A stretch of 64,000 bases of DNA from Polymyxa betae A26-41. Its lineage: Eukaryota; Protista; Endomyxa: Phytomyxea. The translations under genes were made by a program, and so were the position numbers. Positions 37,239-55,705 of the stretch are shown piece after piece. Under the pieces are notes generated by a model. It made no database searches and was not told the DNA's origin. It saw nothing but the letters and a program-made list of their open reading frames with translations. The stretch covers positions 150,467 through 214,466 of the forward strand of contig RBZT01000267.1 in NCBI GenBank assembly GCA_003693705.1, given 5' to 3'. The first letter of the stretch is position 1, and each line of letters begins with the position of its first letter.

Positions 37239-38264
37239 ATGTCTGAGGAGGGTGGTTTCTCAACTAAAAAGGGGAAGGACTTCAGCATTGTCGCCTTCTT
37301 GAAGGATTTGGCTGCCGGTGGTGTTGCTGGTGGTATTTCCAAGACTGTCGTCGCCCCTATCGAACGTGTCAAACTTCTTTTGCAAGTCCAGGCCGCTTCC
37401 ACTCAGATCAAGCCCGAAGATCAGTACAAGGGTATCGTTGACTGCTTTACTCGTGTCGCTCGTGATCAAGGTGTTCTCTCCCTGTGGAGAGGAAACTTGG
37501 CCAATGTGATCCGGTATTCTATTTAAAAGTTGTACTTTGGAATAATAACTGATTTTTATCAATCAGATACTTCCCCACTCAGGCACTAAACTTTGCTTTT
37601 AAAGACATTTACAAGCAAACGTTCGTCCCAAAATCCCGTCAGGAAATGGGATTCTGGCCGTTCTTCATGGGTAACTTGGCTTCGGGTGGTGCTGCTGGTG
37701 CCACTTCTTTGCTGTTTGTATACCCTCTTGATTTCGCTCGTACTCGTCTTGGTGCCGATGTCGGTAAGGGCAAGACCCGTCAGTTTACTGGTACGTCCAA
37801 TTCCATAATCCAGTTCTCTTTAAGTTAAGATTATTTTAGGTCTTGGTAACTGCATCTGGACCATCTACAAGGCGGATGGTCTCAAGGGTTTGTACACTGG
37901 TTTCGGTGTCTCCATGCAGGGAATTATCGTGTACCGAGCTGCCTTCTTCGGTGGTTATGACACTGCTAAATCTCTGGTTCTCTCTAAGGACAGTGGTATG
38001 TTCCAATCCTGGATGGTTGCCCAGGTTGTCACTACCTTGGCCGGTTTTGCCTCCTATCCATTCGATACGGTTCGTCGTCGAATGATGATGCAGTCTGGAC
38101 GTACCGGTGAACGTCTTTACAACGGCACCTTTGATTGCTGGAAGAAGATTGCTGCCAAAGAAGGTGGTGGTGCCTTCTTCAAGGGCGCCGGATCTAACGT
38201 CCTTCGTGGTACGGGTGGTGCCATTGTCCTGGTTCTTTATGATGAAATCAAAAAGTACCTCTAA
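37239..38264 (+). CDS. AAC: Mitochondrial ADP/ATP translocase (two introns)
   Basis: [24 protein letters not shown]; [10 protein letters not shown]|[13 protein letters not shown]; [15 protein letters not shown]. Confidence 0.98.
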
Positions 38265-38607: not shown

Positions 38608-39765
38608 ATGAAGAGCAAGGTTCTGCTCATGGGTAAATCTGGCAGTGGCAAGACATCCATGAGATCCATCATATTTGCCAACTATCTCGGTTAGCGTTTA
38701 TCGGTCTCCTGCCATGTCACCACTGAACTCGTCGTTAAGCAATTGGTACACAACGTCTATTACCCACTCTTGATGTCGAACATAATTATGTAATTTGGTG
38801 CTTTCGAAGTTTCTAAGAACTGTTGTCAATTTGTAATCAGGTTCGATTTCTGGGCAGTCTTGTATTAAATTTATGGGATTGTGGTGGTCAAGATCGATTT
38901 ATGGAGAATTACTTCAAATCACAACGTGATCACATCTTTCATAATGTCGAGGTTATCATTCTCAACCTTCAGATGTTAAGTGCTAATTTGACCCTAAACA
39001 GGTCTTAATCTATGTATTCGATGTCACGTCGAAAGAGCTACAGAAAGACCTCGAATACTTTCATGAATGTTTGGACGCCATTCGATCTATGTCGCCTGAT
39101 GCTAAGATCTTCTGTCTAATTCACAAGATGGATTTGATACCTACTCAGGCTGCTCGTAATGAAACATTTGAGCAACGCACATCTGAGCTTAGATCGGTGG
39201 CATCTGATCTTACTATCGATTGCTTTCAGACATCAATATGGGATGAGTCTCTATATAATGCCTGGTCCAGTATCGTCTATTCTCTTGTTCCAAATGTTTC
39301 AGGTCTTGAACGTCGACTTCGCGATTTCTGCCAGGTGACGAGCTTTTCGTTTCTGTCGAATTTGTCTAATACTGTCAATGTCAAGATTTGTGATGCTGAC
39401 GAAGCTGTTCTCTTTGAAAAAGCGACTTTCTTGGTGATCTCCCAACATGTCGTGAAAAATCATTGGGATCGGCACAGATTCGAAAAGATCAGCAACATTG
39501 TTAAACAGTTTAAACTTTCTTGTCGTAATACGCAAACACAATTCGACAATGTTGAAATCAGAAATACAAATTTCAATGCCTTTATCTCGTCATTCACATC
39601 GACGACCTTTATACTGTTGGTAATGAGCGACACCCGAATTCAAGTGAGTTAATCCTATCTGCTCTAAATTGAATTTCTCAATCGTGTTGTTGATTTCAGC
39701 CTGCAGCTACGTTTATCAACATTGAAGCTGCTAAACCTGTCTTCGAATCGCTTTTACAGAATTAA
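38608..39765 (+). CDS. RRAGA: Ras-related GTP-binding protein RagA/Gtr1
   Basis: [23 protein letters not shown]; NLWDCGGQD; LIHKMDL; TSIWDESLY; [16 protein letters not shown]. Confidence 0.96.
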
Positions 39766-39809: not shown

Positions 39810-41571
39810 ATGAGTAAAAAGTCGAAGAAAGGCGGCGGCAAGAAGGCGGCCGCTGAACCTGAAGCTGCACCAGATCAATATGATATAATGGATAGCGACC
39901 AATTGAAATTGGCGATTGTTGAGATGACAGCTCGACTAAAGGATATCAAACAGCAGAGGATCAGTCAACAAGTTGAACGTGTAAAGATATGGGATGATAT
40001 CAACCTATCTCGTGACTTTCTATGTTCTTAGGACCAATTGCAACAGTTCTTAGATATTGCACATAGTGAAGTGGTGGAGAAAGAAGGTGCCATTGAATTA
40101 ATAGAGTATGAGATGGAGAAGAAGCAGGAGACACAGCAGAATGATATTCGATGGTATATGTCAAAAGTGACACATTTAGAAGTCGATCATCAAGCCAGTA
40201 TTCAAGCTGTAATGCGAAACCATGCTGAAATAGCTGCCACTCATTTCGATTCAGATTGAGCAAGAAAATCAAAATAATCTGCAAGCGGAGATTACGAGAT
40301 CGGAAGCCAGGCGCGAACAGCTTCGTCAGCAACGGTTGGAGCTGGAGAATAAGCTACAGGAGGACAGCTTGGCACACGAACAGGCTATTCGCAACTTGCT
40401 GGTTTTACAGCAGAAAGAGATGCGGAAACTGAATCAGGAATTTGAGCGTCAATCGAATCAGCTGGCGACAAGATATCAGACGAAACTTGCACAACTAAAG
40501 GACGATCTTGAGCTACAACGTAAAGTATGCAGATCCGTATATGAGAGATTTACGAAACAACTTATTGATGATCGGATTAGATGGAGATTCATGAGATCCA
40601 GGAGCGTAAAAATCTTCATATCAACGACTTGATGAGAAATCACGAGAAGTCGTTCAACGAGATGAGGGATTATTATAATTCCATCACTCGCGATAATCTC
40701 GCATTGATTAATTCGTTGAAGGATGAACTCGCTGAACTGAAAGCCAAAGCTGTTGTTAATCAGAGAATCATTGAAGAGATTCAGCAAGAGAATAAGTTTG
40801 TTAATGCGTCTTCATATGATGCTGATTCTGAACTTGATTTTAGGAAGCTCACGGAGCCTTTGTCACAAACTGAAAATGAGCTGAAAGAACTGAAATCGAA
40901 ACTGTCGAACTACATGAAAGAAAAACGTTCCCTGAAGCTAGCTAAAACCAGAGCAGCGCAATTCGAAGCTCAGCTAAAGCGCGAGCAGGCAACTGTATGT
41001 GATTGATCATTCGGGGGTTTAGGCTGACTGATTTCGATTCGTGTAGATGGACGCCTTGAGAGACACATTTAAAGAAGTGGAATCAGATCGAGATCGACTT
41101 TATAATCAGTTCGAATCGGTAGTTCGGGAGATGCAGACGAAATCGGGAGAGAAAGCAGCCGAATTAGAAAAGAAGGTCGATCAACTGATTGAACGGTGCA
41201 ACTGGTTATATTCGGCGCGTATCATTACAGTTCTGATTGATGCTTAGTTATGCCCGCAAATCGAATCAGTTTGGAGAAGTGTTATCAGCCGCTAATCTTG
41301 ATACTCAAGTGGTTCGTGAACTGACGACAAAACTCGATGCGGTCCTGGATTCAAAGAACACCCAGATTAAGCATCTTTATGCTGAGATCGCCAAAGCCTC
41401 CAGAGTAAGCCTTGAGACTCTTAGTGCGGTCCAAAAACTGATTATGGAACTGATCAGGCCCATGACGATCTGATTCACGTCTACAATGCAAAACTTCCTG
41501 AACTTGGCGTTCCTGTCAAAGACATATCAATGCCATTGCTATTAGACCCTCCTGGATCTTCTTCATTCTGA
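39810..41571 (+). CDS. GAS8: Growth arrest-specific 8 / dynein regulatory complex subunit 4
   Basis: EIHEIQERKNLHINDLMRNHEKSFNEMRDYYNSITRDNLALINSLK; KAHDDLIHVYNAKLPELGVP. Confidence 0.93.
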
Positions 41572-41627: not shown

Positions 41628-43712
41628 TTATCTTATATATTTAACATCAAAAGATCGCCTGGCTCCAGGACTTACGACGTGGATTGTATCATACCCAACA
41701 TCATGACTTGAAGGAATCTGCATGCTCGCGAACATTTCGTTGACAGCTAGCCTTTTCTGTCTTTGTCTATAACGAATGGACAACACGATGAGAATCAAGG
41801 CGAAAGCTATTGAAACGGTTATGATGATGGGGAGTTTCCAAGCAGAGAGGAGACGAATCAGAGAAAATCCGGAAATGTCCTTTGTGGATTCTGATGTTGT
41901 AATTCCCAGTTCAGAATCAGCCACAGCCATCATTTGAGGATTCCTGCCGGAAATGTTCTGTGTGGATTCTGATGTTGTAGTTCCCAGTTCATCAACAGCC
42001 CCAGCCATCATTTGAGAATTCCTGCCGCTTGCATCGTATCCAATAACTTGAACCAAATTAACTTTCTGTCAAAGACAGCTACGTGGCTTACATGAATTTT
42101 TCGAGTTATTGGCATTCTCCTCCGGTAAGCCATCGGCCTTCTGGACTGACGGTTGAGGATGATTACGAGATAGATCTGGATGATCAAAGGCTGCATCGAA
42201 GTCGTCTCCGAATTGGTAAGATCCTTCAAATCCATCTTGGAATGAAGGTTTAGAGGTAGGAGATGGATCTGGTTGACCAGATGGTGAATCGCGCCCGTCG
42301 CTCGGTTGGTCAAATTCTTCTAAGCACGGTTGGTTATTCCCATTGGCAACGATACAAGTTTCGAATTATACTGTTGGCGTAGTTGACCGAGTGCAGAATG
42401 TCTGCCGAGAGGGAGCCCTTGCCATCAGAATGTTTAAGTTGAGAGAGTTGTGAATCGAAAGATTCCACAGTGCGTTCTACAGCAACGAGCTGGTCGACAG
42501 CTGCGATCTCGCCAACACCGGCAGCTGTTAAGAGCGACCCAGGCTCTGAACTCTCGGGTAATTCATCAGAATAGATGGCAGCCCCATTTTTATCTGAAAC
42601 TGCCACTTTTGGGATGGAGTCAGCTCGAGAAGATTCTTGTAATTCGTCGAAATCCTCAGCAACGATCTCTTTGTCGGAAAGAGTGCCGTCATTGGTCAGA
42701 GATTCGGAGTTTTCAAGCTGATTGAAAAATTCCAAATCATTTGAATCACTATGTAACTTTGCTGCAGGATCTTCGAGGGTGACATTATCATCATACTCAT
42801 ATCGAACTGATTGGGACAAATCGAATTCACTTTCAGATAAGCGTGAAGATGAATCAAATTCTTGAGGAACAGGTTCTTGACAAAAAGCAGGACCTGCTGA
42901 AGCATCTAGTTGTTCTTCAGTGTGTTCCTCTTCAGAAAACAGAGAAGCCAGATCTAAAGATATTTCTGATTCGTTTTCAGAAACAGCGGCCTTATCATTA
43001 GATGGAATGTTATCTTTCGATGGTTTGTCTGACATTCCTTCAATGATAGTCGTGTCATCAAGAATGGGATTGGTATTATTCACAGGCAATGGATGCATGT
43101 CCGAATCCAGCAATGGAACCACTGGCTCTATGACGTTAGGTTGTTCTGATACTGATTCGTTAAAGCTAGCAGGAGCATTGAAGAAATGAGGTTCCAGAAC
43201 AGGGCGGCGTTCTGTAACAAAGTCGTGAGCGATATACAGCTAAAACTACAGCAAGCACACCTTCCAGGTCATGATCGTTTTTAAGATCGAAGAATGATTG
43301 ACCATTATCAACTGTAGACGGAGAATTGCTTTGCGTTGACTCCAAAATCTGGCTTCGTTGTGACGAGGCCTTGGGATCAACATCTATCACAACATCTTCG
43401 CTTTAAAAAAATTGCAACAGAATTTCAACGCTTTACCACTATTGGTTTTCGCATCAAGGCCTTGGCTACTGTTGTCATCTGCTGTGGTTTGAGTCGAAGC
43501 AGAGGAATTACTGGTCGTTGATCGTTCAGCAGGGTTCGCCTGTGCGTATCATATTTAGATTCGACTTATGAGAACAGCAGCAAAACAACAACCGCATTTA
43601 TGAAATCGTACACGTTCGAGAACAGTTTAATGATATCTTTGGCATCGGGATTAGAAGCTTGGATAACATTAACAGCCAGAGCTGTTGCCAGCAATATCGC
43701 AGCAAATTTCAT
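41628..43712 (-). CDS. Acidic low-complexity type I membrane/surface protein A
   Basis: Signal peptide MKFAAILLATALAVNVIQAS; D/E/S-rich ectodomain; TM IIITVSIAFALILIVLSI followed by RYRQRQKR. Confidence 0.75.
41869..42026. repeat. 78-bp (26-aa) tandem duplication in the juxtamembrane stalk
   Basis: SGRNSQMMAGAVDELGTTTSESTQNI / SGRNPQMMAVADSELGITTSESTKDI. Confidence 0.9.
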
Positions 43713-44271
43713 GATTGCAAGTTTGCAGTTACTAATGAATATGATTATGAAGATGTGAAGGGAAAAGGTGTTGGAAATAATGAGTGATTAGGTAGAAGAT
43801 ATGAGAGGGACAGTCCCTATTCACTGTCATTGTGTTACATTAAATGGACAGTCACAGAGTCTATAGAGATTGCATCTTCTATACCAGGTAGCAGTGCATT
43901 AATATGAAGAGGTAGCCTCCAACAGTCACAGGACTCAAACAGTATCCATGCAACACTGACGAGCACAGAAACACCTGCTAGGCTCCTAGAGAACCGTGAT
44001 CGTGCTGTAACTTGGAGTCCAAGGCGTTTATTGTCGATTGGTTAGGGATGAATATAGCTGTGGGTATAATAAATAAGGGTACTACTGTACATTGAAATGA
44101 GACATGAGAGTAGTGAGAGCGCGGAGTTGTTAGGGGAAGAGAGAAGAGGCTGCGCTCCTGTCGTTCATGTGACATTGCATTGTGATAGAAGAGACCCCTC
44201 TCGCCCTACTTCTTACTTGTTCTGTCTATCGCCTAACAACTTCCATTCTTGATCGTCTGGTCGTCGATATC

Positions 44272-45627
44272 ATGTCTCCCGTTATGGATTGGGAAGCACA
44301 AGATTCACAGACCCAGGCCTATTTTCATGTATGGTCTTTTGATCCAATGCTATTGTCAATTTGGTCATGAATTCGTCCAGGTCCAGATACTCGACATGCA
44401 TTCCGGCAAAGTTCTTTGTCAGTTCGATGATAACTGGAAGACATGTTGGATTGAAGCAGCACACGTCAGACCAACGGTGCCTTCCAAAGAGTCAAATCCT
44501 GGTCAATTTCACCCGGGACAGACCGTAGAAGTTCATACTCGTAGAAATAATGAACAGCCACTGGGATGGTGGAAAGCTACTGTCAAGAATATCAAACAAA
44601 ATGTACGTTTTATTTGATTTTAAATAAGACGGTTTTTAGTCAACCCCGAGTCCAAATAGTGTTATTTAAACTTATATCTCCCAGGTAGCTTGCGTCCAGT
44701 TTCTAAACGCTGGTGAATGCGATTTAGTGGAGCTTCAAGAGATGCGGAGGCTTGATCCTCAACTCAGTATTGATCTGAGTCGCTACAAGAAGATGGAAAT
44801 GACATTGCCTGAAAATCTTAGTTTTAAGGTGTCCTCAGGCTCTTGTAGGGTCTTTTGTCGTCGAGTCGTTTGAAGTTGATCTGATTTTGATTAGTGGATA
44901 ATGATGCTGATTTTATCGCGATCCTACCTTCGGTTAGGCAGCGATGCTCGTTAGTTGCTATCAGCTATCGTCCAGCTAAGCACCAAATTGTTGTAATCGG
45001 AGAAGACTATGCATTAGAGTTATCACGCCCAGTGATTGATATGGCTGTAGCTCAACGAGGGCAATTACAGCAAATGCGTCGAACTACTGAGGATTTAAAA
45101 CGGGAACTGTCCAGGATTACGTCGAGAGAGCATACTCGAGAGAAGAATAACGATTCCCAGCCTGATGGGGTTTGAAGTCTCTATGTGAACTTATCAAACG
45201 TCTCTAAATTATTTGTTGACAGAGAAATAATGCTGTTGAAGAATTTAAGCTGGATCCCGCTTTGATTGGAGCTGTGATCGGCCGGGGCGGCAAGCGAATC
45301 AATAAGATTCAATCTGCGCCTGGAATAGTGAAGATCAACATTGATGCAGAGTCCGCTACAGTTACTATCGTTGGAGATTCCAAGGTCAGCGTACGTCGTG
45401 CTCGAGATGCTCTTGAACTGGTCGAATCTCGAGTGTCAATCCCTTCCGAATCGATAGAGACTGCTAATGAAATTGTCAAAGACGTTGAATCAAGGAGTAA
45501 CCTGCAGCGAATACGTGTTGATCAGACGGGTGAAGGCAAAGACTGTTCCTTATCTATTGTAATCACTGGAAAGAAAGCTGCCGTTAATTGGGCCATCCAT
45601 CACATTAGACGTCAAATTGGCATTTAA
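44272..45627 (+). CDS. FMR1/FXR-like protein A (tandem Agenet + KH0/KH1 + degenerate KH2)
   Basis: CQFDDNWK..VRP..VEVHTRRNNEQPLGWWKATVKNIK; EEFKLDPALIGAVIGRGGKRINKIQSAPGIVKINID..VRRARDALE. Confidence 0.85.
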
Positions 45628-45820
45628 ACGCAAATATCTTTTTGTTGTCTACTTTTTCTGTGCAATGTTGTTTCTTAAGAGTGGCAATAATATCATCTAT
45701 AAGTTGTGGGAACCCAATTTTGAATATGACGATATTCTGTAGCAACGTTTTTTTATACGAACAGAGCTGATGATAGAGACCTGAAAAGATCATTTGTTGT
45801 TGCGCATCTACTTCGATATC

Positions 45821-46273
45821 ATGAGCTGTCTCCGTCGCGTTCCTTCGGTTCGTTTGATCTTCGGCACTCGCTCGCTTGCGACAGGCACCGTCAAAGTGCT
45901 TATACTTGTACTCGATCAACTTTGTGTTAACCTGTTGTAGTGGTTTAATCGCCCCAAAGGATTTGGGTTCATCATCTGTGATGATAGCAAGAGCGACGTC
46001 TTCGTACATCATACCGCCATCAAATCGGACGGATATCGCTATCTGAACGATGGTGAGCGTGTCGAATTTGATGTTGCTGGTCCAGAAGATCGTCGTCATG
46101 CAGCAAATGTCACTGCAGGTCAGTTTGCTTCTCTTCAATCCGTCTCGCTCGGTGTATTAACTTTAAACTTAGAGGGAGGAGGCCCCTTTATTCGTGAAAA
46201 TACTTACCGACCAGATTTGGACTTGTCATCATTCACCAAGAATATGGATTTTGATAAACTGAAAGAATACTAG
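45821..46273 (+). CDS. Cold-shock-domain protein with mitochondrial-type presequence
   Basis: MSCLRRVPSVRLIFGTRSLATGTVK|WFNRPKGFGFIICDDSKSDVFVHHTAIKSDGYRYLNDGERVEFDV..AANVT; two introns. Confidence 0.9.
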
Positions 46274-46320
46274 ATGGGCTGGTTATTACTATGAGTCTTT
46301 ACATTGCTGAGCCTAATTTG

Positions 46321-47221
46321 TTACTGCTCCTGCAGATATTTTGTGGTAGTATCTTTGGCAAGACTGAGAAACCAATAATTGGGATGTTCAGGATTGTGCT
46401 CGTCGATCCAGACGATCCCGAGCTCCAAAAGCAAATTCAGAACTTTCTCGAGACGGTGAATTGGCCATTGAAGTCGCTGGCAGAAATCTGATTTGGTTCC
46501 ATGGCCTGACATAGCTTGTGCATTAGCTAGAAGATCGGTATGATCGGTGTTGAATTCCGCTGGAACTGACAATATCATTGGTTGATTATTGACAAATACC
46601 ATCCCGAACCCCTGACCCAGAATTTTCACCTACACCGATCAATTGCTTTCAAATCTGGAACAATAAATTACCTTATCGATGGCTCGGCGAACATCATCAA
46701 TGGAGATTGGTTGTGCAGAAGAGCCTCTCTTCTTTTGAAGACGCCGCATTAACTCATTCAACGATATCAGCCCCCCTTGGAGCCGATTAGTTTTGAGCAT
46801 TGCAGATTCTATTGATTAGTACCATTTTGCATACGAGTTGACAAACATACATCTATTATCTGAATACTAAGCTCATAATAGAATTCTCCGACGCCAAGCA
46901 GTTCAGCCCAGAATCCTTTGTTAGACGCTAGAGGATCTACACCAATACGATTGCACATTTTGGTAAAATGTGCACGAAATTGTGGATTTGATCGGATATC
47001 TTTCTTATATTTGATTGCGAAAGCTTCCAAGTTCGTCTTGAATGTTTCAAGGCAGCCCCTGATCTGAATGAAGACGAGATAGAGCTCTTAACTATGGTGA
47101 ACTATCACAAGACACTCACATGCGTTATCTGGGTCTGCTCGAGCTCTTTACCAGCAGATTTGAATTTCTCTGCTGCTGCCTTCCTCTTCTGCACAGCGCT
47201 TACACCGATACCACGACGCAT
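46321..47221 (-). CDS. SNF8: ESCRT-II subunit SNF8/VPS22
   Basis: [10 protein letters not shown]; [37 protein letters not shown]; [12 protein letters not shown]; WIDEH..YWF. Confidence 0.95.
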
Positions 47222-47335
47222 CTCTCTAATTAACACCGATTGGCTCTATGATAATCCGTACTGCAGAAATGCTCCAATCTAATGACAAATGCATTATCTT
47301 GAATAAGGCGATCAAATACGAGCAGAGTAATAATT

Positions 47336-48514
47336 TTATTGGTGCTGGCCTGCTGAAAGGAAAGAGCCAAACGAGTCTTCATCTTCATCGTCAGTTTCCC
47401 GATATAGAAACTGTTGCTGTGGAGGTGATAGCACAGGAGGGATCTGATTACTGTCTAATGTTGGTAAATTAGGCAGTACAAATGTATTTGACGCTACATA
47501 ATCGATTATGCTAAAATCAACATCTGTTTCAGCTCTCCCGGCTTCATTATTGTTGCTACTAATGCTGGGGTCATTTCTGATAGGTTTGCTATCATCGATT
47601 TTGGACTCCTCATGTTGGAGATATCGCTCACATTTGGATAATTGGTCAAGGATGGATGCATTGAAATCAAATGCACTAGAACGGTGACGAAATCCGATGC
47701 CAAGAAAGGCGACCTGTCCAGAAATCGAGTTCTTAAATCGAACCACGAAATATCGTGATGTATCGAGAGTTGGTTCAATACAAAGTCGAATTGCTTTCAA
47801 CCGAGCTGACTTGCTGGGTTCAGACTGCCGACAGATTCGCTGTAGATCAATCAGGTCGCTATTAGCGAATACATTCCCTGTACGGGGGTCGTACAGCCTC
47901 AGGAAGACGATATAATCATCTGATGATAAAATACGTAAAGCACCAGACCAGAGTGGGTTCTCCAATTTCCAACTTTGTGCATAATGTCCTTGTGCATCAC
48001 GACGAGGTGGAATCTGATAAACAAATACTTCGGGGATTGTTAGAAGTGATATCTCAGTTTTAGGGACAGCTGATACAGACACCTCCCTTTCAGATCTTTG
48101 CACTTTCGATAATGAAACTGTATGCGGATCTGGGTAGCTGTCTATTTGCGGCTCGCTTTGATTTGGTGAAAAATCAGCATTATATCGAGATGCGAATTCA
48201 TCGAATCTGATAAGAAACTGGGTCCAGAAATGCGATTCTGATGTATGACCAGGCACTAGACGATACCTCAGTTCTGCTAAACGAGGCTCGTATCGAATTG
48301 CTGCTTCACAGATTGATGATCTCTCATCAAGGTCGGGAATCTGATTGGCATCCAGTAAATCTGATATCGGGGCTGTGAATGCTCCAGATATATCGTCACC
48401 AAACTGCGCTTGGAGATCGTCGTAGAACTCCATAAACATCTGCTGTTGCTGGCTGAGCTCAGAGTCTTCCGCCAACCCATAATCAGGGTCAATGACTGAC
48501 GTCGTGTTTCCCAT
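47336..48514 (-). CDS. BSD-domain + NECAP PHear-domain protein (intronless)
   Basis: MGNTTS; PRLAELRYRLVPGHTSESHFWTQF (BSD); IPEVFVYQIPPR..GHYAQSW..LWSGALR..IEPTLDTSRYFVVR..AFLGIGFRHRSSAFDFNASILD (NECAP). Confidence 0.88.
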   Translation of the reverse strand: MGNTTSVIDPDYGLAEDSELSQQQQMFMEFYDDLQAQFGDDISGAFTAPISDLLDANQIPDLDERSSICEAAIRYEPRLAELRYRLVPGHTSESHFWTQFLIRFDEFASRYNADFSPNQSEPQIDSYPDPHTVSLSKVQRSEREVSVSAVPKTEISLLTIPEVFVYQIPPRRDAQGHYAQSWKLENPLWSGALRILSSDDYIVFLRLYDPRTGNVFANSDLIDLQRICRQSEPSKSARLKAIRLCIEPTLDTSRYFVVRFKNSISGQVAFLGIGFRHRSSAFDFNASILDQLSKCERYLQHEESKIDDSKPIRNDPSISSNNNEAGRAETDVDFSIIDYVASNTFVLPNLPTLDSNQIPPVLSPPQQQFLYRETDDEDEDSFGSFLSAGQHQ

Positions 48515-48736
48515 AATAACCCGTGCCGACACAATTACTAAGTTCAGATGAGCATTACGTTTGGATTTTGACTTCACTTCCGAAGATCAGATGGAATATG
48601 AAAGTGAATGATATTTACTGTAATATGAATGAATGAATGCTGTATAGGAAGTTGCAGCCTTTAGTTATGTTACATATCAATAAGATCACTCTATATTATG
48701 CATGATCATCTGTAGATAGTTGTATATTTATATGAT

Positions 48737-48915
48737 NNNNNNNNNNNNNNNNNNNNNNNNNNNNNNNNNNNNNNNNNNNNNNNNNNNNNNNNNNNNNNNN
48801 NNNNNNNNNNNNNNNNNNNNNNNNNNNNNNNNNNNNNNNNNNNNNNNNNNNNNNNNNNNNNNNNNNNNNNNNNNNNNNNNNNNNNNNNNNNNNNNNNNNN
48901 NNNNNNNNNNNNNNN
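48737..48915. other. Scaffold gap (179 N)
   Basis: Run of N flanked on both sides by tgtatatttatatgat. Confidence 0.99.
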
Positions 48916-49234
48916 TGTATATTTATATGATCATACAGCTTATCGTACAAGTGCAATTATTGCATGTATATGGGACTGTTCTCCCATCTCATATGTCTAA
49001 AGCATGCTAGCCATTTAATATTGGGGTTGATGATGGTTAGCTAAAAGACAAGCAGCAGACAACACCTGGACATAGGAATGAATGTTATCTGCTTCATGTA
49101 TTAATAATTTGTTAGGGTTAGGGGTACGACTGTATGGGGGGGAGGGGTCCCCTTTACCACAGGGTTATGTATGTCATACTGGACCATGGTCGACTATATG
49201 CAGGGCCCGCCTTTATCAATCAGATTAATTGACC

Positions 49235-50785
49235 ATGATCTTATCCATCTATCTTGCTGCTCTGGTTTTTATACATTTTGATCATATCGATGCACAGCCT
49301 ATCAAAGGGGATTCACAGCGTCAGCCATGGGCTTGCAACGAGAGCTCCTTCTGGCAATCGATTCTGTCTGATGAGAATGAGGGCCCTCGGTGGATTTGCC
49401 TAAGCTTGTTAGTCTCGAGTGCTTATTAGAACTACAGAGTTGTACATAAAGCTAATACGTTCACAAATCGCAATGAACCAGATTCTGATAAGGTGGCGTT
49501 CTGGCGTTGGGCAGCTTGATAAATCTGACTTGGTGACTTACAGGATATTAGTAGCAATGAAATGGTTAGCAATACGGAATCTGATCTTGAGTCCGCTACC
49601 ATTTCCAGTAATATTAACGAGAAAACGTCCAGTGAACTCAACGACTTGGATGCCGATGCATTCCCCCCCGAGGAATCGCTAAATTCTGCCAAAAACTCTC
49701 ATTCTGCAACCATAGCTTATCAAGCCGATGAATGCGATGCTGACGATGACAGTCTTGTCGAATTGTTGGCTGAATCTCTTTATTCTTTCATAATAGAGTT
49801 AGTAACTGTAAGCTAGCGATACTCCATTTGTGTTGGTGAACTAACATGGTTGACTACAGGAAGAGCTAAAAGCCACTACTGTACAAACAGATTTACAAAG
49901 TGATCGGAGCGAAGCAGAAGATTTTGAAGTAATTCATGCCTTATTGCTTTTTTGTGTTGAAATGCGAATTTCATTCAGGTGGTCACTGCGGATCATCAAT
50001 ATAAATATCCAGAAAAAGCTGATCGAAAACCAAATCTAATTGAACGCCTGGGAATTGCGTCATTTGGTAAATGGAAGCAATAAACACAGTTGAACTATCT
50101 GAAGCCCATCGCAGGAACAAATAACCATGAAGCTCCTTGTGAAGTTGAAGAAATGATCAGGAAGATTGAAAACACAGTTCCTTTTGCTCAGGTAATGATG
50201 TCTCCTTAGATATGCCAAAATCCCTTGACAGCTTAGCAATCATGTCACATTTAGCTCATTTTTAAATGCTAGGCGGAAGAGCCCTCTTGTGATATCATCC
50301 GCAATGAAGATGGAAGCGAAAGGCAGGACGTGGCCCTTGAAAAAGATGTTTATCAAAATTCGGGTCAGGGCGCAGACGATGAAAACGGTCGAGATCCTGC
50401 TCATGATCAAAAGAGCTGTGAGAAGTTGGACGAAAGGAAGGAAGTCCAGTACAAGATATCAGCAATTCCGTCTACAATCCCACATGATAGGCAAAACTCT
50501 GGTACCAAGAAACATCTGATACCAGTAATGTATGTATCAGGCCTGATGGGAATCGTCATTGCTTTCATTGCATTTTACCTATATTATCTGCATTATCGCC
50601 GACGCTTACAGGCGAATTGGATTGCGTCTGAAGAAAAAGCGATGTCTGTAGCTGAAGAAGATTCTGATACGGAAAGGCCTTTTTCAACCTTCGTCCAAAT
50701 GCAATCGCCAGGGAATGTGGACACAGTTAAAACCAATCGTTGGAACTTTTACTCTGTGATCACCTGGTGCAAATCGCGATTATAA
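49235..50785 (+). CDS. Acidic low-complexity type I membrane/surface protein B
   Basis: Signal peptide MILSIYLAALVFIHFDHIDA; acidic exons; TM LIPVMYVSGLMGIVIAFIAFYLYYL followed by HYRRR. Confidence 0.72.
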
Positions 50786-51051
50786 TCAAGTGTAATTCAG
50801 AGTGTACAGTTGAATAACTTAGCGTCTGGTTAAAGGCTCAAGTGATAATATATCTTGCCAGTGCAAACAATACATGTTCCACAAATATCAACCATAAAAG
50901 TAAAGCTATTATAAAACCTGTTATTACATTTTTACACAAAAACTGGCTACAGACAATCACTGATGAATCTTTATAAAGATTATGGACCGTTGTAATGAGG
51001 AACACCGGGGAAATGTGTCTGTCGTTAGTTGAAGCCATGGTATCGATATCA

Positions 51052-52746
51052 TCATTGGGTGCTCTCTTGCGTACCGACATTAGCGACAACGCCATCCTGA
51101 GACTCTTGTTTCGAAGGTACACAGTTAGATTCTCCAGAGCTCCCAGGGACCTCATCCTCAGAACGCTCTTTACGATCATTAGATCGCGGAGGAGTCTTCT
51201 GTCCCTCCTTCTTCTTACTGACCCATTTCGGCTTACGGTTTCGCCTCTTTTCTGTTTGCTTCTCTTGAGTGGGTGTTGTTAAGGTAGGTTGTTGTTGCGG
51301 CTCAGATAATTCGCCCTCTGGTTTTGTCTCTTCCTTTGGCGGCGACTCCGAACTCCTTTGTTGACCCCTGCGAACTTCATACAATTGTTGTAGAACTTGT
51401 TTCTGCTCTTGATCTGCTTTGTCCCATTCTGATCTGTACTCGATATGCTGTTCAATTAGCAGCTGTGCACTTTGGACAGCGTCCTTGGTTCCAGCAATAT
51501 GCACAACGCAGGTGCCATTCTCAGCGTTATCCACAATGCGAAGGTGATGAGCCTTGCTCATCTGCTCCAGCTGCTGAATGGTTTTGTTGGCCTTACCACG
51601 GATCCATCCAGCTAATTCGGGGGCAATCGGTACGTCAGCTTCAACAAACTCGAGGGCTGCACGAGCAATGCGGACAGCTTCAGGAGTTTCACCAACGATG
51701 CGAACGATTCCGGTTTTCGTGTCAATGTTAGCGGATGATACACCAGGCATATTCTGAACAGAATTGATGCGTGTGCCATTCTGTCCAATGACCAAACCGA
51801 ACAGCGACGGGGATACAGAAAATTCTTCTACAAAAGAATGATCGGCCTGAGACAGCGTCAACTTTGGCCAATTAACGACGAAATAGAATAAAGGCTACCT
51901 TCTCCTTGGCAATACGAAGCTGCTGTTTGGCCATCTCAGTGCGGTTCTGCATCTGATGTAGCTGAGTCTGATGGGAGACAGCCATCTCGATCAAAGGACG
52001 GGCAACATTCAGCGACGAATCAGTTCCAACAACGACGATCTTGTGTTCGGCAACATTGTAGCTCACAGACATGACTCCAGACTTCTGCAACACAGAGTCG
52101 AAAATTGGAACATGGGTCATATCAGGCGACTCTAAAGCATTATTAGCCAATGACGAAAGCGGAATAAGAAGTATAAGATACCAGGCAGGGGCAGAGAGGG
52201 GGAGTTCTTCAAAACAGGTGTCAAGGTTAGATCGACTCGCTTTATGTAAGTCAAATCAATGCTCTTTTCGGTAGATTCTTGACGAATGTGGGGAAATTCG
52301 AAGATATCATCGAAAGAATCCTCAAATCCAGTAAAATGCACCAAAGCACACTAACAAACAAACCGTCAAAAGATCTGATGACAAAAAACATTAAGACCGA
52401 CATTGTTTTTAACGGATTTGATGACACCCTTAAACCAGCCGCATGGCTGATTTTCCTTCGCCTGTGCCTTGACTTCAACATGTTGCCCGACAGAGAATGT
52501 TGGATTGGCATCGACGTCGGTTGGGCTTCGCCTGACATGGGAGCTCGCAACCCAACAAAACTTCCAATTGGGTTGGAAATTGCACAGAACCTGCCCCATT
52601 TTGATATCCAGAATGGAAACCTGATAAAACATGAGCACAGATTGATGATCAGATTCGCGTCTTACATTATAGAAGCCGGAGGTCGTGGGATCAAACGCTT
52701 CCCATGCAGTTACTGAAGGTAATGGCTGCTGCGATGAGAATGGCAT
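51052..52746 (-). CDS. FMR1/FXR-like protein B (tandem Agenet + KH0/KH1/KH2 + coiled coil + basic tail)
   Basis: CNFQPNWK..VEVKAQAKENQPCGWFKGVIKSVK; EEFSVSPSLFGLVIGQNGTRI..PGVSSANID..GETPEAVRIARAALEFVE..GWIRGKANKTIQQL..GTKDAVQSAQLLIEQHIEY. Confidence 0.9.
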
Positions 52747-53167: not shown

Positions 53168-55705
53168 TTAATAGTTGATGCGAATCCCACCTCGCCGGAG
53201 CATGTTGGTTGAGGTCGAGAACAGATTGTCTTCGCTGTCTGACTCCATGTTAATTGAATCAGATTTTGGCTGATTGGTGAACACAAGGTTGCTATCTAGT
53301 AATGAAAGCCGTCGTTGACGAATAAGATGACGGCGAGTGTAAAAGAGCAGCAATGACAGAATGACTAAGGCAGGAATAAGGGCAGCAATCCATTTGAACC
53401 ACCCTTGTGACCACAATGGTACAAATTTTAGTTGCTGAGGTTCGCTAGCTATGGGAACATCTTCCGGTTGCATTTCTACGACGAGCTCCTAGGAAAAACA
53501 ATTAATTGCCCCAGACCACTCGAAAGTAATGAAATTTACCGATTTGGATTCAATCACTGACAAAGGCTGAGCTTGCCTAGATTCTTGAGCCACCTCCTGA
53601 CTAGACGGGTGAACAGCGTTTTGAATAGGTGTGTCCTCATGGAACTTCCAGCGCTTCCCAGTGACCCGCTTATCCTAACAGATACTTTGATTACAATCCT
53701 TGATGGCACCATTCATGGGCTTACCTCAAGCGCTAATTCAGCAGCCTTCCTTTTCCTGGGTTGCCGTTTCGGCTGCTGATGCATGACACCAGCGCCCTGA
53801 GAGTCATTTTGTTGGAGGCCTTCGACAAAGAGAGGCAGACTGTGCTCGCTGTATGGCTTGTTAACAGAAAAGTCATCGGAAGATGGTAACTGGTCGCCGG
53901 AACCATTATCGTGCTCAAGTTTATCAATGCGGATGCCATCAGAGACAGTAATTTTGCCATCGAAATGAACGTCGCGATCGGGCTTGGCTTGAGAGGAGTC
54001 AGACAAGCAAGAATCGTCATCCAAAGGAGGTTTGTGAATTTCATCTGAAAGCGATTGCGATATGCCAGCTTCACTATCAAAACGTGAATAAGATTCGTCA
54101 GTGTCATCAGCAAGGAGCGAATGTAATATGTCGATTTCATCATCTGAAGTCGAATATGATTGGCCAGCTTCATCACCAGAGAGTGATTTTGGTATGCTGG
54201 CTTCATCATCAGGGTGTTCGCTGTATGGCTTGTTAACAGAAAAGTCATCGGGAGATGGTAACTGGTCGCCGGAACCAATATCGTGCTCAAGTTTATCAAT
54301 GCGGATGCCATCAGAGACAGTAATTTCGCCATCGAGATGAACGTCGCGATCGGTCTTGGCTTGAGAGGAGTCAGACAACGAAGATTTGTCATCCAAAGGA
54401 GGTCTGTGAACCTCATCTGAAAGCGATTGCGATATGCCAGCTTCATTATCAAAAAGCGAAGAAGATTCGTCAGTGTCATCAGCAAGGAGCGAATGTAACA
54501 TGTCGATTTCATCATCTGAAGTCGAATCTGATTGGCCAGCTTCATCACCAGAGAGTGATTTTGGTATGCTGGCTTCATCATCAGGAAACGAGTATGTGTC
54601 AGTGTTATCATCAGAAGGAGAATTCGAGGGCGATGATGAACCATAACGATGGAATGCCGTCGAAGTAAGCATCTGAATGAGCGCAGGGCGTAATAATGAA
54701 TGTTGTGGTTCATCCTCTAACCAGCCTATGATGGTGTTTGGCTTCACAGTACTATGTTAGCAGTTTCTAATGTTTACAAAATGGTTCCTTACCAGCTGAT
54801 CTTTCTTTTGTTGCCGCTGCTCTCGCTTCTTTTTATTTCGTTTAGCTTTCTGTTTATATGGTCAGTTGAAGAATTAAACACGCCTCATACTTAGGTTATA
54901 CCCTCACAGCAACATTCACGCTCTGCTGCTGATCCTGCACATAATCAATAGATTGAGAGAGTGAATTATCCTCTAAACTGATTTGTTCTTTCTCTTGCGG
55001 TCGGTTGTTTTGCAGTCGGGTCCGCCTCCTCTTACTTCTTGTCGATTTCCTTTTGCTCTGTTTCTGGGCCTAGAAACCTCTCAATCAGAACCTTTTTATG
55101 TAAAGTCATCTCTAATAATACCGCTTCATCGCAAACTGAATTGGTAGCAGTATCGGTCTCTGTGTTCTGCTGTGTAGGTGTAGGCTGAATGGACTCAACA
55201 TTCAGCTGTACATTATCCTCTTCACCCTTCAAATCTATGACAGTGTCTTCTTCATCTGAGGAATCTAAATCCACCCATGAGCTCAACAAAATACAACCTG
55301 ACAACGAGCAATCAAACCTCGATGGCTTTCCTTGGTAATTTCAAGTAACTTAGCAGCAGAACGTTCACGTTCTTCCCTGCGTTCCTCCTGACGACGGCGT
55401 TTTTGTGATAGATTTTTGTGCTTCTGTGAACGTAAGCATCCCAGTCGACCAAAAAAAGAATGACCTTTTTGACAACAACAATTTGATTATCTTCTGTAGA
55501 TGGATCGTAACTGTCCGCACCTTCTGGCTCTAATAGTTGAAATCTATTATATAGACCAACCTAAAAACGAAATTGGCGAACAATTTCAGCAGTGTTCTTG
55601 CAAGTGGCCCACCTGTTTCGTATGACCACGGTTAATGACATCTTCAAGATAAGCGAATGCTGTTGAGCTACAGAACAGGATAGTGAAGAACAGGCTGATA
55701 TTCAT
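53168..55705 (-). CDS. Acidic low-complexity type I membrane/surface protein C with internal repeat
   Basis: Signal peptide MNISLFFTILFCSSTAFA; D/S-rich exon 53713-54747; TM WIAALIPALVILSLLLFY followed by TRR. Confidence 0.72.
53842..54585. repeat. Two-copy 372-bp (124-aa) in-frame tandem duplication
   Basis: ctgtatggcttgttaacagaaaag at 53849 and 54221; ggtatgctggcttcatcatcagg at 54191 and 54563 (offset 372). Confidence 0.95.

Follow-up and report, generated by a model that had tools for sequence, protein, structure and literature searches.

Two FMR1-family genes in the plasmodiophorid Polymyxa betae: family identity, ancestry and possible roles

The closest described systems to the genes treated here are the animal proteins FMR1, FXR1 and FXR2. 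FMRP, the FMR1 protein, is usually taken for an animal protein, and a survey of 88 taxa, including 14 species of the Stramenopiles, Alveolata and Rhizaria (SAR), gives it as a metazoan feature, found only in Metazoa (PMC8868631). Repression by human FMRP depends on the RGG box and the C-terminal domain, which are essential, while the KH1-KH2 domains are dispensable (PMC9712993). This leaves a puzzle, as the KH mutations I304N and G266E cause fragile X syndrome even though the KH domains can be dispensed with for repression in vitro. In other KH domains, RNA binding suffers when the GxxG loop is changed (PMC3413153), and the second Tudor domain of FXR proteins binds trimethyl-lysine peptides weakly, with affinities of 0.4-1 mM (PMC2970552). 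Described here are two genes, A and B, in a stretch of 64,000 nucleotides (nt) from Polymyxa betae A26-41 (assembly GCA_003693705.1, contig RBZT01000267.1, positions 150,467 to 214,466 of the forward strand; hereafter the window, whose own positions are used throughout).

In identity and ancestry, A and B are very probably native, vertically inherited co-orthologues of FMR1, FXR1 and FXR2. The best explanation as a whole, in which these native co-orthologues act in messenger ribonucleoproteins (mRNPs) and A serves as a partner or modulator of B or as an adaptor, is given a probability of about 0.7. A preliminary description of the window, made from the sequence alone, had assigned both genes to the FMR1 family, and this assignment is upheld by reciprocal best matches, fold, phylogeny and common intron positions.

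Gene models and family identity

Gene B, the longer paralogue, lies on the reverse strand (51052..52746) and encodes 498 amino acids in five exons (52746-52666, 52620-52402, 52350-52182, 52131-51899 and 51846-51052). Gene A, on the forward strand (44272..45627), encodes 372 amino acids, likewise in five exons (44272-44328, 44381-44602, 44685-44844, 44895-45169 and 45223-45627). The two proteins are 37% identical over 377 columns and are the only copies in the genome. All introns have GT-AG ends, measure 45-82 nt and follow the same order of phases (0, 0, 1, 0) in both genes. In a single contig of run X11 all four introns of A are missing, at precisely the modelled junctions; introns of A's neighbours are skipped in the same run as well, so X11 is RNA. 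A contig of run X2, from another study and ~97% identical to A, skips two of A's introns. X11, like five other runs, holds 0.81 of the 31-letter words of B (1347/1665), and since this is the share left once all four introns are removed, B can be inferred to be spliced as modelled. Intron 4 of B lies at the identical place in the metagenome orthologue L003. The X2 contig, which covers window positions 44235-44796, indicates expression of A in a further strain or closely related species.

Library, domain and fold searches were run exon by exon, with the database orthologues P0002 and P0152 standing for the full-length proteins; the joined translations served in local alignments, in trees and in the local scoring of profiles against fetched proteins, and relatives were drawn from an exhaustive protein search. 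One sequence that looks like a mammalian, perhaps human, FXR2 (P0022) entered only the first screen and the first tree. Exon 5 of B matches the KH1-KH2 pair of FMR1 (2QND) at E=2e-17, against 3e-4 for the next unrelated KH protein, exon 2 matches only Tudor chains of FXR2, FXR1 and FMR1 (E 1.5e-5 to 1e-3), and exon 4 aligns with KH0 in a profile made from animal sequences alone (E=4.8e-5). P0002, which is 56% identical to B over 470 columns, matches FMR1/FXR chains only in the PDB, over both halves. All of the top 12 fold matches to its model (predicted local distance difference test, pLDDT, 79; core above 90), which was built from an alignment that included animal rows, are likewise FMR1/FXR, and the model matches 4OVA/4QVZ including KH0. 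A profile without animal or known holozoan rows placed nine FMR1/FXR chains at the top (E down to 5e-40), and the non-holozoan and animal-only profiles align with each other along 369 columns (E=2e-78), in the same order throughout the core. For A, KH1-KH2 finds its best fold match in the same FMRP pair (2QND; template modelling score 0.73), and its Agenet and KH_1 domains are seen by Pfam. An ESM Atlas search with the KH exon of B returned only generic matches, under 0.9. Both genes thus carry the full N-terminal layout with which the preliminary description had credited them, as Agenet-Agenet-KH0-KH1-KH2 is recovered by sequence, profile and fold. Comparisons by sequence, profile and fold alike returned FMR1, FXR1 and FXR2 as best matches, not generic Agenet or KH proteins. 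The tandem N-terminal Agenet/Tudor pair, KH0, the adjacent FMRP-type KH1-KH2 and an intact KH1 GxxG are all present, and the reciprocal best matches place A and B in one orthologous group with animal FMR1/FXR; an intact KH2 GxxG, an RGG tail and FXMRP1_C_core, as in animal-type members, are absent.

KH1 has an intact GxxG loop in A, B and all aligned kin. In B it spans 51649..51834 (loop GQNG), with Gly286 aligned with Gly266 of FMRP, and in A it spans 45238..45417 (loop GRGG; Pfam KH_1 E=5e-12). The motifs quoted for B in the preliminary description are present (ENQPCGWF, 52455-52432; GLVIGQNG, 51798-51775; RAALEFVE, 51663-51640; GKANKTIQ, 51597-51574; GTKDAV, 51492-51475) and align with FMRP as it stated, including the isoleucine of GKANKTIQ, which as Ile324 falls on Ile304 of FMRP. 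What had gone unnoticed is that this same motif carries a broken KH2 loop, with GKAN for GKNG. The KH2 domain of B (51448..51633) thus has a GxxN loop, found also in its closest orthologue, P0001, while GxxG is intact in P0002 and in Plasmodiophora brassicae. B continues past the core into a post-KH2 helix and a disordered tail with a Lys/Arg-rich patch ending KKKEGQ (51199..51249), which is kept in both B orthologues. In A, alignment shows a four-residue deletion in KH2 (45424..45624) that takes out the GxxG loop, with the fold kept (pLDDT 94), and the stop follows KH2 directly, leaving no tail. This shortness, the missing KH2 loop and tail, and a stem branch length of 1.1 in the 36-row tree described below are what might be expected if A were a decaying copy and B alone functional. 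That outcome is very improbable, given the intact frame of A, its spliced contigs in two studies, its KH2 model and an orthologue from another sample, P0127, which is 75% identical to A with the same deletion and the same stop residue.

Animal contamination, or generic Agenet and KH domains brought together by chance, might be suspected in an assembly binned from a mixed root sample, the more so as the FMRP-specific Pfam models are silent. Both are refuted by the phytomyxid affinity of the nearest kin (Plasmodiophora and other phytomyxid-type proteins), by intron sizes and GC content at third codon positions like those of neighbouring genes, and by an FMRP match that is collinear over the whole core. 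The argument against contamination in the preliminary description, from intron-rich structure in local style, is supported, and is extended by orthologues in other phytomyxids, spliced RNA and common introns.

Ancestry and distribution

The tree was built from 36 rows picked from the first tree, with one or more per clade; it is unrooted, with no other KH or Agenet family as outgroup. The phytomyxid genes form one group (100/100), as do animals with Pigoraptor and one unnamed row (99/95) and the dinoflagellate-type rows (100/100). A and B types group together without Plasmodiophora (98/93), and each paralogue has orthologues of its own (P0127 for A; P0001 and P0002 for B), a pattern that places the duplication inside the plasmodiophorids, after Plasmodiophora split off. 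A grouping of phytomyxids with animals alone is rejected (p-AU, the approximately unbiased test, 0.0006).

Intron positions add a second line of evidence. Intron 1 of A (44329..44380, in Agenet1) and of B (52621..52665), both phase 0, and intron 2 of A (44603..44684, in Agenet2) and of B (52351..52401), also phase 0, share codon and phase with the introns of P. brassicae and with introns 1 and 4 respectively of a vertebrate FXR gene; the position of intron 1 is also occupied in an aphid gene. Two matches among four introns would arise by chance with a probability of ~5e-4, which rises to 0.013 when the sites able to take an intron are limited to one in five. Introns of the dinoflagellate Amoebophrya, whose placement required non-canonical ends, have no position in common with A or B, and the core of the labyrinthulid Hondaea has no intron. 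The Amoebophrya orthologue (L019) has ~11 introns, most of which cannot be placed with GT-AG ends. Because introns 1 and 2 are common to both sides and the grouping with animals alone is rejected, the best fit is inheritance from the ancestor that animals and SAR have in common. The simplest reading of these sequences would have the family present in that ancestor, with many later losses.

An old transfer between eukaryotes, from an animal or another holozoan and with introns included, would also account for the common positions. It would suit the patchy distribution seen in the 88-taxon survey, and phytomyxids stood beside Holozoa, weakly (78), in the first, quick tree. Such a transfer is nonetheless quite improbable: besides the rejected grouping, Holozoa form a clade of their own (99/95), the gene occurs also in dinoflagellates, a labyrinthulid and several unnamed protist clades, and identity to mammalian FMR1 is just 23-24%. 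Vertical inheritance is thus retained as the account of A and B.

The exhaustive search recovered the same core in many proteins from outside the animals. Named kin comprise P. brassicae PBRA_000718, the nearest named relative of A and B, together with proteins of the filasterean Pigoraptor chileana, the dinoflagellates Yihiella yeosuensis and Amoebophrya, and the labyrinthulid Hondaea fermentalgiana; further clades consist of environmental sequences lacking names. In the ESM Atlas, one cluster auto-named 'Fmr1-b protein' has Perkinsozoa as its commonest members and another has Chlorophyta, each with few named members. One group of kin, P0023 with P0013, P0019, P0042, P0046, P0048 and P0053, among them the Hondaea protein, starts at KH0 without an Agenet pair and, from its sequences, appears to be a second architectural variant. 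Three hemipteran FXR proteins (P0003, P0005, P0006) carry repeated KH1-KH2 or KH0-KH1-KH2 blocks.

The novelty implied by the preliminary description is overstated for this organism and understated for the family: the A/B pair is not unique, being one part of a wider protist set that spans several supergroups and of which some members are already auto-named FXR1 or Fmr1. No account of protist FMR1-family proteins was found in the open literature, to which the search was confined (subscription papers were not covered), and such proteins go undescribed in the portions consulted of PMC3361156, PMC4634149, PMC5862402, PMC9282427, PMC4105795 and a preprint on the interactome of the last eukaryotic common ancestor. 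That surveys miss these genes would be explained by the limits of Pfam, which detects no more in them than KH_1 and, below threshold, Agenet. What stands out is the age of the family, backed by the common introns. Orthologues in Rhizaria, Alveolata, Stramenopiles and Filasterea, together with two introns common to Rhizaria and a vertebrate, indicate that it is far older than animals, and put its origin no later than the animal-SAR ancestor, long before neurons.

Predicted roles of the two proteins

By analogy with the animal proteins, a role for A and B in mRNPs is fairly likely. They may be cytoplasmic mRNP proteins in which the Agenet-Agenet-KH0 portion would serve oligomerization and partner docking and KH1 would bind RNA. 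The conserved basic tail of B probably provides a low-specificity contact with RNA or the ribosome in place of the RGG box, and B would thereby tune the translation, storage or transport of mRNAs. A, having neither tail nor KH2 loop, would most likely be a partner or modulator of B, or else a KH1-only adaptor; its modulation of B, taken singly, is a tentative proposal and rather doubtful. The genome also contains CYFIP, ataxin-2 and four Argonaute matches; Caprin had no match in the genome, by a search of little information. The four Argonaute/Piwi matches (contigs C351, C355 and C776, two of them inverted on C776) are each a single open frame of ~840 codons, apparently intronless, in an intron-rich genome.

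Several observations weigh against the explanation of A and B as native co-orthologues with mRNP roles. At the level of identity, Pfam KH_9, Tudor_FRX1 and FXMRP1_C_core find no match in the exons of A or B, and the Agenet matches fall under the Pfam cut-off (E=2e-5 in A, 1e-4 in B). The KH0 exon of A, which is collinear with that of B, is not significant on its own against the animal profile (E=0.11). The deep branches among protist groups are weak (78/92). At the level of function, the RGG box and C-terminal domain needed for FMRP repression are absent: the tail of B holds no RGG box and A has no tail, unlike many other protist kin, in which RG-rich tails are present. The KH2 GxxG is altered in both proteins, to GKAN in B and by deletion in A. 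Partner genes such as CYFIP, ataxin-2 and Argonaute are common in eukaryotes, so that their presence would allow a network like that of animals but does not prove interaction.

With the RGG box and C-terminal domain absent and the KH2 loop altered, FMRP-like repression is not simply transferable to A and B. B may rely on its basic tail in that capacity, an option closed to A. The preliminary description had pointed to FMRP-type translational control, with mRNA storage in spores as a conjectural example; that proposal is only partly supported, as these same absences speak against it. Repression as in FMRP is thus possible by analogy, on balance somewhat doubtful. The absent RGG box, the altered KH2 loop and the presence of CYFIP would also be consistent with true orthologues that act mainly as protein adaptors, through a link from KH0 and CYFIP to WAVE and actin, or as readers of methyl-lysine through the Agenet2 pocket, with RNA binding reduced. 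The pocket residues remain aromatic or acidic (FMRP W80/Y96/E105 correspond to F90/F106/D115 in B and W83/F99/D106 in A), and the FXR Tudor 2 domain does bind such peptides. Its affinities are, however, merely in the range cited above, the KH1 GxxG is intact in A, B and all aligned kin, and the basic tail of B is conserved, which makes this alternative improbable, and an mRNP role is preferred.

A broader proposal would see the family as an ancestral eukaryotic mRNP regulator, retained by many protists that are flagellated or form spores but lost from plants and the usual model microbes, with a plasmodiophorid form that lacks RGG and has two subunits, A modulating B. In its entirety this proposal is unlikely. 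If the two-subunit form did exist, it would give a natural setting in which to test the core and the I304 position in the absence of the RGG repression domain. More generally, single-celled systems and natural variants lacking RGG or the KH2 loop bear on the puzzle of the KH mutations.

The locus and comparison with known systems

A and B likely lie 5.4 kb apart. An assembly gap, seen as a run of N (48737..48915), occupies the spacer between a BSD-NECAP gene on the reverse strand and a membrane-protein gene on the forward strand; it interrupts no reading frame of either A or B. A 16-nt direct repeat on both flanks of the gap is found nowhere else in the 27 Mb genome, and since this unique 16-mer stands on both sides, the gap probably represents overlapping contig ends. 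No read or contig bridging 48737-48915 was found.

The window holds several further genes. A cold-shock-domain gene (45821-46273, forward; Pfam CSD E=6e-21) starts ~200 nt past the stop of A, placing a second RNA-binding gene beside it, and its one intron is confirmed by a spliced contig. It is followed on the reverse strand by an ESCRT-II gene of SNF8/VPS22 type (46324-47230; Pfam EAP30), whose introns are confirmed, and by a single-exon fusion of BSD and NECAP (DUF1681) domains (47336-48514). One X11 contig spans all three, as expected of overlapping untranslated regions. Three acidic genes (41628-43122, reverse; ~49330-50785, forward; 53168-55300, reverse) encode a C-terminal membrane-like segment and carry internal repeats of 78 and 372 nt; Pfam recognized nothing in those of their exons that were scanned. 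Splicing is seen in the middle gene. A and B each stand head to head with one of these genes, and B stands tail to tail with another. Ordinary genes on the forward strand are an ADP/ATP-carrier-like gene (37239-38264), a RagA/Gtr1 gene (39071-39652) and a GAS8/DRC4 flagellar gene (40336-41006), the last of which accords with the 'flagellated' protist of the preliminary description.

Set against the known systems, A and B resemble most closely the Plasmodiophora protein PBRA_000718 (CEO97373.1, annotated 'K Homology domain-containing protein'), which has the same core and introns 1 and 2 and is 39% identical to B and 33% to A. It differs in being a single match among the best 150 rather than one of a pair, in having both GxxG loops intact and in lacking introns 3 and 4; its neighbourhood also differs, with no synteny beyond the gene itself. 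Hondaea GBG23865.1 (auto-named FXR1) and the Atlas Fmr1-b proteins have the KH0-KH1-KH2 core in common with A and B, the Hondaea record being without the Agenet pair. Plant Agenet proteins and generic multi-KH proteins (FUBP/KSRP, hnRNP K, IMP and vigilin) have only single domains in common with A and B; their scores are lower by tens of orders of magnitude, and none of them spans both halves. In contrast, the animal FMR1, FXR1 and FXR2 proteins (4QVZ, 4OVA, 2QND, 3KUF, 3H8Z) agree with A and B in domain order and spacing, fold, KH1 GxxG, Agenet2 pocket aromatics and two intron positions, as well as in the equivalents of G266, I241 and I304 (Val in A), and with B in the post-KH2 helix. The Polymyxa proteins depart from them in having no RGG box or FXMRP1_C_core, in a KH2 loop that is GxxN in B and deleted in A, in the ending of A at KH2, and in an identity to hamster FMR1 of 23-24%. 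The duplication that gave rise to A and B is independent of that which produced the vertebrate FMR1/FXR genes.

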